Of a DNA stretch of 64,000 nt, positions 4,189 to 29,977 are shown one piece after another. Every line of letters begins with the position of its first letter. Within the stretch, counting starts at the first letter, position 1. Both the position numbers and the translations under genes were made by a program. The notes under the pieces are model-generated. The model did no database searches. It was not told the origin of the DNA and saw only the letters and a program-made list of their open reading frames with translations. The DNA comes from Mytilus trossulus (taxonomy: Eukaryota): contig NC_086373.1 in NCBI RefSeq assembly GCF_036588685.1, positions 4,774,001-4,838,000 of the forward strand, written 5' to 3'.

Positions 4189-5250
4189 TTTGCGGCTTTG
4201 GTTGTTGAACGATGTGTGCGAATGAACGACAGATTACAATGATATGCAAAATTATTATTATTATTATTATTGATGTTTTGGGAGGCGACTTTCCTGCTGT
4301 GGAACTTGCGCCCTAATTTCACTTATCGTTACTGTTTTTTGAAGAAACTTAGTGTTTCGTGTTTTGTTCACTACACGTGAGTTCTTAAGTTGTGAGTTTT
4401 TTTTTTGTTCTTTTTTTTTTTCTAAGTCTTTAATGTATTGTGGTTTGACTTTTGTAGAATTCTGTAGATTTCTTTTTTAAATATTTATTTTGTCGTTCAA
4501 ACTTTTGTTTCGTTGCATGGCTAATTACTTAGATTGCTTTGATTTGTATGGTAGTAACAGCTAATTAATATACATGAGTGTATAAAATGAATCTGAATGT
4601 CCATCGCTGAAGATAGAGATTAGATAATGCTTCCCGATAGCCCGGTGTCAATTATTTAATGAAAAATTGCCAAATATATGTATGCGCCAGGTAAAAAAAG
4701 ACTGTCGCATACTTATGTCACCTACATTGGGATTAATAAAAGAATTAAAATATATGTTAAATCCCCTAGATACCAATTAAAGAGACCAGTTTGAGTTATG
4801 GTCCCCTTGTTCAGTGAGGATTGTCGTGGTCTGTGTATTGACCCCGACTGCCCTCACTGACCATGAGACCACCGAATAATCAATCTGGTAATTAAATTTT
4901 GAACTGTAACCCACTATTGACACCGTGACTACGGGAACTACTACTACCATACTGTTTGGACCCAGAGATTGGCGTCCTGTGGCCAATGAGGCATAGTGTG
5001 TGCAACTTTGCAGTATAATGTATAATGAAAGATACATGTGCGACCAGCAGTATTATTTTCATTTGTTATGCAGCATTTTAATTTTAAAATCTAAAATAAG
5101 TTTAACAAACATTTTATCCATTAACAAATTTTCTTTTTTTTTTTTGTGGGGACAGATCTCAATGAGTTCTCCCTAATATAGGTAGACCCCAATTATTTTA
5201 TGTAAAAGATAAAATCCATTTCCTGTACAAGTATTATAAAAGTAATACTT

Positions 5251-8200
5251 TTAAAGTATCATTCTATTCGTGCTCTTTACGTATGTATCAATTGGTAAAA
5301 AATTATATCCTGTTAGGATATTTTTTAATTGAAAGTTCTGTATTTGTAACTTTCTTAAACTGTCAAATAAAATAGATCGTTCTGTGTTATATAATTTGCA
5401 GTGTAATAAGAAATGTTCAACTGTTTCTTCAACACGACACTCCTCACACAATTTAGTGTCAGATATGCCTATTTTATAAAGATGTTTGTTCAATGGTATA
5501 TAACCAGTTCTTAATTTAAAAATCAGTCTTTCTTTGTATCTGGACATTTTTGGTATTTTTATGTCAAAATTAATTTTTGGACTTATTTGATACAATGCTC
5601 TATCTTTCTCTTTATCCCATTCTTCTTGCCACATTTTTTTCATTAAATTTTTACACAATGTTTTAAAATCATCTTTGAACAACGGTACAAAGATATAAAT
5701 ATTTTGAAAACTTAATGCCTGTTTAGCATGAAAATCAGCCAACTCATTGCCTTGTATTCCTACATGACTTGGTATCCATTCAAAAATTATATTTGTACCT
5801 GAATGATACAATGATCTTAGTAAAAAATGAATGTCAAGTAAGAATTGATTTCTTATCTTGTTTAAAGGTATTTTCAGTGCTTGAAGCGCTGATAGAGAGT
5901 CTACAAAAATCACAACGTTAAAAGGTAAAAAGTCTTGTAACCATGATATACATAAATAAATTGCTGTCAATTCACACATAAAAATAGAAAGGTGATTGTT
6001 CAGCTTAAATCCCTTATTGATTTTTAACTCTGGAATGACAAAGGCACAACCGGCATTGCTATTTGGATCTTTTGACCCATCAGTGAATATTTTTAAATGG
6101 TGTTTATATTGAGTATCTATCATGATATTGGCTTCACTTTTAATTAAATGTGGTAAATCCTTTTTAGAAATGTAATCTTTTAAATACGTGTTTACTATAG
6201 GTACTGTAAAATGCCATGGGGGGATTGGACTTTCTCTATATATAACTACATTATTTTCTGAAAAATTATTTCCTTTTAGAGTATCTTTTGCAATTAATGT
6301 AAATGGTTTACGTTTAACAGTTTTACTATAAAATTCAAAAGTAGCAGTATCTTGAATTGATTTTTTGGCTGGATGGTTGTTTTCGAAAGTAGAAATATTT
6401 AAAAATGATTTTGTTATTAACGCTTTTCTTCTGATTTCGTAAGGAGGGTCTCCCATTTCCACCTGAAGTGCTTTTAATGAAGCTGACTTCATAGAACCTG
6501 TACATAAACGTAGAGATTGTGTTTGTACCTTATCTAAAATTTTCTTAATAGATGCAGAGGCTGTATTGTAAACCTCACAACCATAGTCAATTTTTGATCT
6601 TATTAAAGCAATATAAATTTTTCTTAGTGTATATAACTTGTTGCTCCCCATTTCGTTCCCGTTAAAAGTTTCATACAGTTTAAAATTTTTGTACATCTTG
6701 TATTAATATACTGAACATGACTATTCCAAGTAAGATATCTATCAAAAATAATTCCAAGAAATTTAACTTCTTTAACAACTTCTAAAATGTGATTTCCTAT
6801 TTTTAATATAATATTATTACAATTTGATTTCCTAGCAAAAATAACTGTGACTGTTTTTGAAGGTGAAAGTAAAAAACCCCAATTTGAGCACCATTTGCTT
6901 ATACTATTCAAGTCTTCTTGAATTTTTTTTTGTAAAAATTTTAATGATGGTCCAGATTTCCAAATTGCCCCATCATCTGCAAATTGTGACATTTCACAAT
7001 TTTTTAAACAGTCTGACATGTCATTAACCATAATATTAAAAAGCGTTGGACTTATACAACTTCCCTGGGGGGTACCATTTTCTAAAACAAAAATATCTGA
7101 AAAAGGGTTGTTTATCTTAACCTGCAATACTCTATCTGAGAGAAAATTATTAACATAAGCAAGCCTTTAAGACCCATTTTTTTCATTTTTTTTAATAAAC
7201 CATGTTTCCATAGCATATCGAAAGCTTTTTGGAAATCAATAAATATTCCAACTTATATGTGTTTTTTAGCAAAAGATTTCTGTATTGCATTTTTTAGACG
7301 TATACATTGCTGTATCGTACTTTTATTTTTTCTATAACCGTTTTGATTCGGGTTAAATATATTATTTTTTTCCAGAAACCACGTTAATCTGTTGTTAACC
7401 ATTTTTCCATTGTCTTATTAAAATTAGAAGTTAATGCAATAGGTCTATATGATAATGGATCACTAAGATCTTTACCATGTTTAAAACTAGGAATAATTGT
7501 TGAATGTTTCCATTCCTTTGGAAGTTCTTGTAACATCCAAATTTTATTAATAAATAGTAAAAATATGCAAGGTTTTATTAGATAAATGGCGAAACATACT
7601 ATAAGTTGTTCTATCCTTTCCCGGCGAGCTATCATTAGGGAGCTACCATTTGATTTTTATGGGGGGGGGGGGAGGGGGCTAGGATGAAAATTTTTGTCCT
7701 GCTTTTTTTTTTTAGTTGTAATCTCTGTCCTGCCTTTTTATTTTTTACTCTATTCGGTCCTGCCTTTTTTTTTACTAGTTTATCCTGACTTTTTTTTTAC
7801 ACAAATTGTCATCCTGCCTTTTTTTTACCAAGTTGCTCATCCTGCCTTTTTTTTTTACTCAAAACTCCTGTCCTGCCTATTTTTTTCAAATTTCATCCTA
7901 GCCCCCCCATAAAAATCAAATGGTAGCTCCCTTAGTATCAGCTATTGCATCTTTAAATTCTTGCAATGTAAATTTTTCATTAAAACAATCTGTATTAATT
8001 TTGTAATATTCAATAAAATCATTTGTCTCTTCTTTTTCTGTTTTAGTCTTTAATTCTTTGAAGTCGTTATTGTAATTTGATGTACTACTGACTTTGCAGT
8101 AATTTTCTGCAAATACGTTTGCTTTTTCTTTCGTATCTGTAATAAATCTATTAAAATATTTCAGAATAGGAATGTTTGTCCTAGTACTTATCTTCCCTAA

Positions 8201-9342
8201 CATCTTTTTTACATTATGCCGTAGATCTGAAATGTTATTATTACAATTGAGACTAGTACAGTAATTTGACCAATGGTTGTCCTGTGTATCTTTTAATACT
8301 TTTTTACAAAATCTTTATCTTTATAAATTTTAAAATCATTGCCATTTCCAGTATGTCTTGCTCTATTTCTAGCTTTGTTTCTAGCTTTTATAGCTGAAGT
8401 ACATTCCTTTGTCCACCAAGGAACACAAGGTTTGTTTGTTTTATGAAATTTCTTAATAGGAATATGGGTACATGCTATATTAATCAATTCAGTGGTTAAT
8501 GTATTGTTAGTTTGCTGTATATCATCTGTAATTAAATTCTCTGTAAATTTAATGTCACATCTCTTAAAATTCCATTTAGGGGAGAAATCACTGTTGTAAT
8601 CACCAATATATATATTAGAATCAATGTACACACAAAAGTGATCACTTCCAAAGGTGGAATGTTGATCTACCAACCAATTAATTTTTTGTCCAATATTAGG
8701 ACTACAAAAAGTCAGATCTAAACATGATGTTTCTAAATTAATCGGATTCAGTCTAGTTCCTGATCCTTCGTTTAAAAGACATATATTATTATCTTGAATA
8801 CACTTAAAAAGTTCTCTACCTTTAGTATCGATTCTTTTCCCCCATAATGTATGGTGAGCATTAAAGTCACCACATAATATGTATTCTGTTGTAATTTGAC
8901 TAAGAAGAGTATCATAGTCTTCATATTTAGTGTCTAATTTAGGGTCATATAAATTAAGTATCAGTAATTTCTTACTATTATGTATAATATAAATTGCAGA
9001 AGTTTCAAATGTACTCTGAAAATCAACTGTACTATAGTTAATATATTGTTTAACATAAATGGCTGTTCCACCTCTGTTAACACCTCGACTTGAGAATGTT
9101 GCGAGTGTGTAACCTGGTATTTCAGGGTAATCTTTTTAGAGATTACAAAAAGTTTCTTGAAAACATAAAATATTTGGCGTATCTTTAATATTGTTTAAGT
9201 GCCATATAAACTCCGGTATGTGTGACCGAATTCCCTGACAGTTCCAATGTGCCAAACTAAGTTGTAAAGCCATGAGTATGATTAAAGTATACATTATAAT
9301 TGACATGAATGTAAATAGTATATATTTCATTATTAAATACAA
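5251..9342 (-). pseudogene. LINE ORF2 (APE-RT-RNase H), broken by frameshifts, deletions and a MITE
   Basis: Fragments match the 1277-aa ORF at 23606-27439 (YRPIALTS, NGTPQGS, FADD, FTDGSK, WIPSHVGIQGNE). Confidence 0.93.
7638..7931. mobile_element. MITE, 294 bp, PIF/Harbinger (Tourist)-like
   Basis: TIR GGGAGCTACCATTTGATTTTTATGGGG / CCCCATAAAAATCAAATGGTAGCTCCC; TTA TSD at 7635-7637 and 7932-7934; empty site (atcattagtatc) in LINE copies 2 and 3. Confidence 0.93.
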
Positions 9343-28765: not shown

Positions 28766-28799
<34 letters not shown>

Positions 28800-29977
28800 G
28801 TAGAAAATTTTCTGAACCTAAGTTTACACAACCTGTATATAAATATCTTAATGTAATATCTAAATAAATAGCTGAAATATCTGAAATATCAATGCCTGTA
28901 CATAAAGTAAGAAACTAAGTTTACATATAAATAACAATCAGTGCTCAGTAACTAAATGCATGTGTGTGACACCATTGGACTCACTACCAATGATATGCAA
29001 AAATCACTGACAGTGTGTAATTATCAAACTAACGCGGACCTCGACGAGAGCACCCTTAAACTTTCATGACAATCTAATTCAAACAGATCGACAAGAAAAT
29101 CTGTGTGCTTGTTCGACAAGTTTTAATCATTTGTTTCAAATAAATTGTACTTTTTGTTATATAAATGATACACGAAAATTTTCAGCAGGAATTTATCTTT
29201 CAGAATATGTCATAAGAATTAAACAAGATACCACGAGTGAAGAAATATTTACGATTAATGTACAACTTGTCAATTTCACTCGTGCGATTCTTCATCAGAA
29301 AACGTGTTGTATTATTTCACAAAAACTAGATTGTGCCGTAAAAATGATATAAATTTGTAGTAAAATCATTTCTTTATATGTTTTTGCTTTCAGATATACA
29401 CAGAAATAAAGAGACTTCCCAGAAATTTAGATTTTGCCTTCGATATGAAAGCACACAAAGATGGCAAACTTCGAAACCGGGACTTCCTTGACCGAGATGA
29501 AAGACGTTTCAAATATTCGAAGTTTTTACTGGAACTTTACAAACTATAATTATTATTTATTGTTTATTATTTGTTTTTGCTATAATGAATTTTTGCTAAT
29601 TAGAATCCTTTTAGAATAAAATATTAATCATATAAGCCCTGGTCAAAAAGAAAGAGGCGATTTCAAATGACGACAAATGGCGGATACCATATGATCACAG
29701 ACGACCTTTCAAAGACCTAATTTTAAAAAAATATATATAGTCACATGCATGTGGAAGGAGTGGAATTCTCAAGTGTATATAACTTGACGTGCATGTATTT
29801 CACTTAAAAATATTTCAACATGCAGATGGGTATTGAAAACTAAATAAATTTATGAATGATTTATTTTCTGTTTTCTTCATTGATAGCTAAATACATTGAA
29901 TATTACATCCAAATAAATTAGTAAAAAAAATATTGAACCATTATGTTTGGTAGGAATACAAAATTATACGTAAAAAA

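Follow-up and report, generated by a model that had tools for sequence, protein, structure and literature searches.

Recurrent insertion of an otherwise dispersed LINE at a single site in the tandem histone H1 promoters of the mussel Mytilus trossulus

Ordinary long interspersed nuclear elements (LINEs) are thought to be loose in their choice of site. R1-type elements lack RNase H, and the I element of Drosophila ends in a (TAA)n tail. For yeast Ty3 at RNA polymerase III (Pol III) starts, Dictyostelium TRE5-A upstream of tRNA genes, and SLACS and CZAR in spliced-leader genes, it is the transcription complex or the promoter architecture, not a long DNA motif, that sets the site, through dedicated mechanisms acting mostly at Pol III genes. 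The targets of target-specific LINEs are rRNA, spliced-leader and tRNA genes, those for small nuclear RNA (snRNA), transposons, microsatellites and telomeres; histone genes are absent from this list, and these LINEs belong to clades with a restriction-like endonuclease (RLE) or, among clades with an apurinic/apyrimidinic endonuclease (APE), to Tx1 and R1, RNase H-bearing I-type elements being absent as well (PMC4640811). De novo insertions of the Drosophila I element favour AT-rich positions and show a ~2-fold enrichment in the promoters of genes that are expressed, and its fixed insertions are depleted in promoters by selection (PMC10018349). Nimb LINEs, members of the I superfamily found in bivalve genomes, are RNase H-bearing and have microsatellite-type tails and conserved 3' ends common to short interspersed nuclear elements (SINEs) (PMC11481361). 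In full-text searches of the literature we met no account of a LINE in a histone promoter. Here we describe a (TAA)n-tailed LINE which has inserted repeatedly and independently at one position in the promoter of tandemly repeated histone H1 genes of the mussel Mytilus trossulus. We started from a stretch of 64,000 nucleotides on chromosome 1 (hereafter the window; C1:4774001-4838000), in which a first-pass annotation had proposed a retrotransposon specific for H1 promoters, and searched the whole 1.3-Gb, 14-chromosome assembly.

The window consists of 2342-bp units in tandem array, each bearing on the minus strand a gene for a 198-aa histone H1 (Pfam Linker_histone PF00538, E 2.5e-29 in a profile search) with a histone-type stem-loop 3' of it. 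In the unit taken as reference, the gene lies at 45048..45644 and the uninterrupted target site at 45693..45709 (both on the minus strand), the latter reading CAATGATATGCAAAAAT on the plus strand and ATTTTTGCATATCATTG on the H1-sense strand. In H1 sense the promoter has the order GATAATTA-N13-ATTTTTGCATATCATTG-TAATC...-ATG. It includes a TATA-like ATAATTA (45723..45729, minus strand) ~33 to 27 nt upstream of a putative minus-strand initiator, TCA(+1)TTG, whose A is at 45696 and which would give an H1 leader of 52 nt. Genome-wide, 192 left half-sites and 178 uninterrupted sites of this promoter were counted. The array on C1 comprises ~190 units, of which a minority of 5-7% is occupied.

BLAST of the reference unit against the window revealed five interruptions of the tandem units. 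Three of them (4252-11193, 13559-20242 and 22609-28987) consist of the same LINE on the minus strand, and its 3'-end motif was found five times (4270, 10910, 13576, 19958 and 22626). There are hence three full-length copies and two 300-bp 5'-truncated copies, all co-oriented with H1, just as the first-pass annotation had described. All five (TAA)n tails meet the target CAATGATATGCAAAAAT at its GCAAAA(A)(T), at a distance of 65 nt upstream from the H1 ATG. The first-strand nicks lie on the plus strand, which is the template strand of H1, after A3 to T of the A-tract. This would place the nick between the TATA-like box and the initiator, ~13 nt upstream of the putative start. The target is repeated over 13-14 bp at the truncated copies and over 17 bp at the full-length ones.

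The first full-length copy (4252..10878, 6627 bp) has an open first open reading frame (ORF1, 424 aa) and an ORF2 in pieces. It is followed by the 15-nt target remnant CAATGATATGCAAAA (10879..10893) and the truncated copy T300a (10894..11193, 300 bp; repeated target TGATATGCAAAAAT), which differs from the 3' end of its full-length neighbour by 6 substitutions and ~28 gap positions. The second (13559..19926, 6368 bp; ORF1 broken with 280 aa open, ORF2 shortened to 1193 aa open) is arranged likewise, with 15 nt of target between it and a truncated copy, T300b (19942..20242), lying head-to-tail upstream. T300b equals T300a except for one indel and is a duplicate rather than a new event. The third (22609..28987, 6379 bp) has an open ORF2 of 1283 aa encoding APE, reverse transcriptase (RT) and RNase H, and an ORF1 split in two; the target copy directly 5' of it (28988..29004) sets an intact H1 TATA/start region before the LINE. 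All these features are on the minus strand. Downstream of the insertions the H1 genes retain intact reading frames, and the gene behind a full-length insertion has the (TAA)n tail in the place of its TATA-like box. Because the truncated copies are identical apart from that indel and the intervening units share 99.9% identity, the window represents two events, one full-length and one truncated, amplified as a 9-kb higher-order repeat. The annotation had attributed some copies to duplication of the array and counted at least two and probably three events, of which the window bears out two. Between its two full-length haplotypes the difference is only 0.3-0.65%, and they have one 5' junction in common.

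Repeated use of the site becomes evident over the whole H1 array (C1 4.76-5.07 Mb), which holds 11 copies of the (TAA)n LINE (eight full-length, the two T300 and one of 1265 bp), every one of them joined after GCAAAA(A)(T). Full-length copy A (C1:4763475) is joined upstream to H1 coding DNA, with ~620 bp of the target lost. Copies B1 and B2 (C1:4862431 and 4868842) form a tandem pair separated by the 15-nt target alone, and the upstream target of copy C (C1:4939750) is short by 8 nt. A further full-length copy, E, lies at C1:5068998, and the truncated copy T1265 (1265 bp) at C1:4929097. T300 and T1265 have distinct 5' ends and 14-bp repeats of their own. The full-length copies fall into four lineages that are 0.75-1.2% apart although they reside in units 99.9-100% identical, and both ORFs are open in four of the eight. 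A maximum-likelihood tree computed from the 3' 1.85 kb has H1-site copies interspersed among dispersed ones; its well-supported branches force at least 4 label changes, and each array lineage has a dispersed sister copy. On structure there were at least five insertion events (full-length, B2, A, T300 and T1265), and probably about seven if lineages are counted. By our own arithmetic, 174 copies would yield ~5e-5 hits by chance in a 4-nt window of 190 units. Recurrent independent insertion at the H1 site is therefore far beyond chance, and on this point the annotation was right.

The family as a whole is not confined to this site. A 25-nt 3'-terminal motif of the LINE occurs 174 times in the genome (0 for a reversed-pattern control), and ~163 of these 3' ends (about 94%) lie outside the array at unrelated sites, on all chromosomes. 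Full-length 5' ends are more evenly divided, with 8 of the 18 in the array and 10 outside. Thirty of the best dispersed loci were fetched, and identity and flanks were judged on these: the copies are 92-99% identical over up to 1.85 kb, their flanks are unrelated, and copies 98-99% identical to array copies are among them. Dispersed truncated copies have target site duplications (TSDs) of their own, 7-13 bp in length (e.g., CTATGAAATG and TGATCTCATATAA), and the only common feature of the dispersed nick sites is a loose A-rich 3' end. The end of ORF2 is open in most long dispersed copies examined, which points to a young family. Scans of metagenomes for the 5' and 3' ends of the LINE gave no match.

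Three further readings were considered and rejected. A 3' transduction of H1 sequence serving as a homing device is ruled out, as the target follows the tail in 0 dispersed copies. Homing on the LINE's own 5' end is ruled out as well, since none of the dispersed full-length copies has another immediately upstream of it. A second recurrent target seemed to be present at C13:1.05 Mb and C13:33.66 Mb, where two LINE copies have a common flank, but this flank stems from an old segmental duplication inside a satellite-like repeat.

The element is ~6.4 kb long, with two ORFs, a 3' untranslated region of ~1 kb and a (TAA)n tail, every complete 3' end having 4-7 TAA units. ORF2 (1277 aa) contains, from the N-terminus, an APE domain (PF03372 and PF14529 at 32-238), RT (PF00078 at 541-780) and RNase H (PF00075 at 997-1124), and database relatives have the same architecture. 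Zf-CCHC matches in ORF1 are weak (E 6e-4 to 1.6e-3), just below the Pfam gathering score. The nearest database proteins to the LINE protein are 51-57% identical and bear no clade-name labels; the nearest named one is from Mytilus galloprovincialis. Domain order and tail fit I/Nimb, an assignment resting on these two features, and the APE and RNase H domains argue against the RLE clades. The element resembles the Drosophila I element in its two ORFs, its APE, RT and RNase H domains, its (TAA)n tail and its dispersed distribution, and can be likened by domain order and tail to the bivalve Nimb LINEs, with which it shares RNase H and a microsatellite-type tail.

The (TAA)n LINE is not alone at the H1 promoter. 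An element of ~630 bp with a (TA)n tail occurs in two units (junction GCAAA|TATATA, TSDs of 10-11 bp; no match in ARAGORN or Rfam searches), and a 4.8-kb LINE with a (TTG)n tail, encoding APE, RT and RNase H, in one (junction GCAAAA|CAACAA). The latter is 5'-truncated inside its APE domain, and part of the upstream unit is lost. The two elements have in common a 50-nt 3' motif with 2530 genome copies, and dispersed copies of this motif follow short A-runs. The (TAA)n, (TA)n and (TTG)n families all join within one 4-nt window of the H1 promoter. Since families with different tails use that same window, the target is implicated rather than the endonuclease of one element. The fourth interruption (31408..36403, minus strand) is a different LINE: its tail is (TCTA)n, it encodes APE and RT, and neither an RNase H match nor a TSD was found. 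It sits ~60 bp upstream of the hot spot in the same promoter and is co-oriented with H1; among the 224 genome copies of its family, no other lies in the array. Each of the array's 15 LINE-derived pieces has the orientation of H1.

Taken together, these data probably describe an ordinary, young, dispersed, RNase H-bearing LINE of the APE type, and a hot spot that is mainly a property of its target, the redundant H1 core promoter. The LINE would insert by target-primed reverse transcription at loosely A-rich sites throughout the genome. Its hot spot, a strong one, is a 4-nt window that corresponds on the template strand to the A-tract of GCAAAAAT and sits ~13 nt upstream of the putative initiator. 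In dividing germ cells the H1 core promoter is probably accessible and very active, and a ~190-fold redundancy of the gene would let it tolerate insertions. The loose preference of the endonucleases for A-runs would then fix the exact nucleotide, and unequal crossing-over or duplication of the array would multiply the copies afterwards. The annotation's view of the H1 array as a safe niche is upheld as far as tolerance is concerned, while its sequence-selective APE domain finds no support at the dispersed nick sites. Some points weigh against our interpretation. The enrichment, several orders of magnitude over chance, is far above any published promoter preference of an I-type LINE. The three families sharing the 4-nt window are related, being all RNase H-bearing with RT regions ~69% identical at the DNA level, and a shared endonuclease preference for a longer motif among them is possible. 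Among the full-length lineages, array copies could in principle have seeded dispersed ones. The sample, moreover, consists of 244 kb of the array (the window and 180 kb beyond it) and the 30 dispersed loci.

The upstream ends of the full-length copies raise a further possibility. Of the 17 bp repeated at these copies, 7-10 nt are CATATCATTG, which the element carries at unrelated loci too, so that the 17-bp TSDs of the annotation hold as repeats of the target but not as duplications throughout; the true duplication is ~7-10 bp plus terminal homology. This leader, which the RNA of the element would thus carry, is identical to the H1 start region, making the full-length copies exact fusions to the H1 promoter. 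It may be either the element's own initiator, aiding a seamless 5' join, or a piece of H1 captured via the duplicated start site. Should the second apply, full-length array copies would be transcribed from the H1 TATA/start site, their leader (C)ATATCATTG would derive from H1 by 5' transduction, and array copies would be the main sources of a family whose dispersed members are largely progeny. Such promoter capture is compatible with a target-side hot spot, and we regard it as a possibility to be taken seriously though with less than even chances. Wherever a full-length copy of the array is the upstream-most one, an intact H1 TATA-like/start region stands exactly in front of it. Dispersed full-length copies at non-H1 loci show 3-10 nt of CATATCATTG before GTAGTGAG and do not have the TTTTTG that precedes it in H1. 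In copies A and C the leader adjoins DNA other than the target (in A, TCATTG is fused to H1 coding DNA; in C, ATATCATTG is fused directly to GTG). The hot spot exists without the leader, because truncated copies and other families also use it; a 10-nt identity right beside a duplicated target is consequently very unlikely by chance, and it is this that makes capture a serious possibility. The eight full-length 5' ends in the array, four of them with both frames open, and the dispersed sister copy of each array lineage are likewise in keeping with it.

Nevertheless, the argument for capture is drawn from sequence, and several observations weigh against it. Copies that differ at 2-3 positions within the first 18 nucleotides of the body have the leader too. 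It is hence old, and it may be nothing more than an initiator belonging to the element, the initiator-like TCATTG being found in both the element and H1. The end of ORF2 is open in dispersed copies too, and at one dispersed copy microhomology with its own target explains part of the apparent leader. The broader scenario, in which the H1 array acts as a breeding ground (the promoter nicked preferentially between TATA and initiator, the fusions transcribed as H1 is, the 10-nt leader captured and the dispersed copies mostly progeny), is somewhat more tentative still.

A weaker rival to the target-side explanation dispenses with chromatin altogether and supposes that related families of the RNase H type recognise a longer motif around GATATGCAAAAATCAC by a shared endonuclease preference. 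The distribution of the families would suit it, as the three related ones occupy the 4-nt window while the unrelated LINE with no RNase H match lies 60 bp away, and the dispersed nick sites of both groups end in short A-runs. Yet the targets reconstructed at dispersed loci share only a few A's with the H1 site (e.g., CTATGAAATG|G and TGATCTCATATAA|A), and more than 90% of the copies are at sites without the motif, which leaves this explanation unlikely.

Very little speaks for a single ancient insertion that, in the absence of any targeting, was multiplied by unequal crossing-over and gene conversion. The five copies of the window are indeed duplicates in the 9-kb higher-order repeat, and B1, B2 and E are only 0.02-0.03% apart. 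The junction structures contradict it, though, by their differences: there are three different 5' ends with different lengths of repeated target, tandem pairs with nothing but target between them, and a copy A whose upstream junction is unlike the others, to which are added four lineages within identical units and other families in the same window. Least credible of all is a strictly site-specific H1-promoter retrotransposon, as first proposed, for despite precise and repeated junctions in a multicopy gene the genome-wide flanks are unrelated, with ~94% of the 3' ends and 10 of the 18 full-length 5' ends elsewhere and provided with their own TSDs; copies lying mostly at unrelated sites were the very observation that the first-pass annotation had named as its refutation.

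Set beside the described systems, the H1 hot spot combines features of several. Like R1 and R2 in 28S ribosomal DNA (rDNA) and Utopia and Keno in U2 snRNA genes, the mussel LINE uses a fixed nucleotide (11 of 11 array copies) in a tandem multicopy gene (192 promoter half-sites), occupies a minority of the units, and leaves head-to-tail and 5'-truncated copies at the site, with redundancy buffering the harm. Unlike those elements, nearly all copies of which are in their target, it has only ~6% of its 3' ends there (11/174; 8/18 for full-length 5' ends). It also departs from target-specific LINEs of transcribed RNA gene bodies in bearing RNase H and in using an RNA polymerase II (Pol II) core promoter. 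From the Drosophila I element, for which neither a single-nucleotide hot spot nor an association with histone genes is described in PMC10018349, it differs by an enrichment that is orders of magnitude larger. Its copies in promoters would persist because the H1 gene is redundant. As with Ty3, TRE5-A, SLACS and CZAR, the insertions have a fixed distance from a (here putative) start, a fixed orientation and a multicopy gene as target; unlike with those elements, the site is common to several otherwise dispersed LINE families and belongs to a Pol II histone promoter.

Other features of the array and of its surroundings were recorded. The first two units of the window (H1 at 1206-1826 and 3568-4188) are ~96% identical to the other units; their H1 is a variant of 206 aa that differs by two small insertions, TA close to the N-terminus and SAGEKK within the tail, and the H1 of units adjoining LINE copies has one N-to-K change. 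Each unit contains two direct repeats of ~262 bp at unit positions ~877-1344 (e.g., 44303-44770 of the window). Mussel chromosome-1 H1 repeats are reported to be interspersed with 5S rDNA (PMC4106214), and these direct repeats may be 5S rDNA. The fifth interruption of the window (51294-54198) is a DNA transposon of 2905 bp in a unit spacer, with a 5-bp TSD (ATTAC), perfect terminal inverted repeats that start CACAGTG...CACTGTG and no long ORF, which looks like a non-autonomous Transib-like element. Four gaps of N (100-N gaps; C1:4956801-4956900, 5010474-5010593, 5037295-5037394 and 5059033-5059132) interrupt the array, and three of them adjoin blocks of inverted units, which leaves it uncertain how the array is ordered on a large scale. 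The 3' motif of the (TTG)n and (TA)n elements is found in tandem at C1:80147195-80148040 and C1:91691530-91692717, mostly with a 68-bp period and some steps of 136 or 206 bp, in what resembles a satellite made up of the 3' end of a LINE or SINE.

Mytilus (2n = 28) has H1-only tandem clusters and two core-histone clusters (PMC4106214). Correspondingly, core-histone arrays of 5.6-kb units were found on two other chromosomes (C9:27.63-28.21 Mb and C6:33.64-34.09 Mb), and several irregular spacings in them suggest insertions. The genome-wide motif search located no zero-mismatch 3' end of the (TAA)n LINE in either array. These arrays were probed by hypothesis-driven patterns, as were the 5' ends of dispersed full-length copies and four other H1 sites that look interrupted.

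The pattern at the H1 hot spot, where several LINE families dispersed elsewhere meet to the nucleotide and in a single orientation on the core promoter of a replication-dependent histone gene, lies between random and site-specific integration. It suggests that a promoter's architecture or activity is able to steer target-primed reverse transcription. Because of the identity between the leader and the H1 start, it can be tested in a concrete case whether a LINE has borrowed the core promoter of its host and, if the breeding-ground scenario held, this would be a Pol II counterpart of the start-site targeting of the Ty3/TRE5 type. With ~190 identical targets per genome, the H1 array provides a natural system for measuring LINE target choice in a mollusc.

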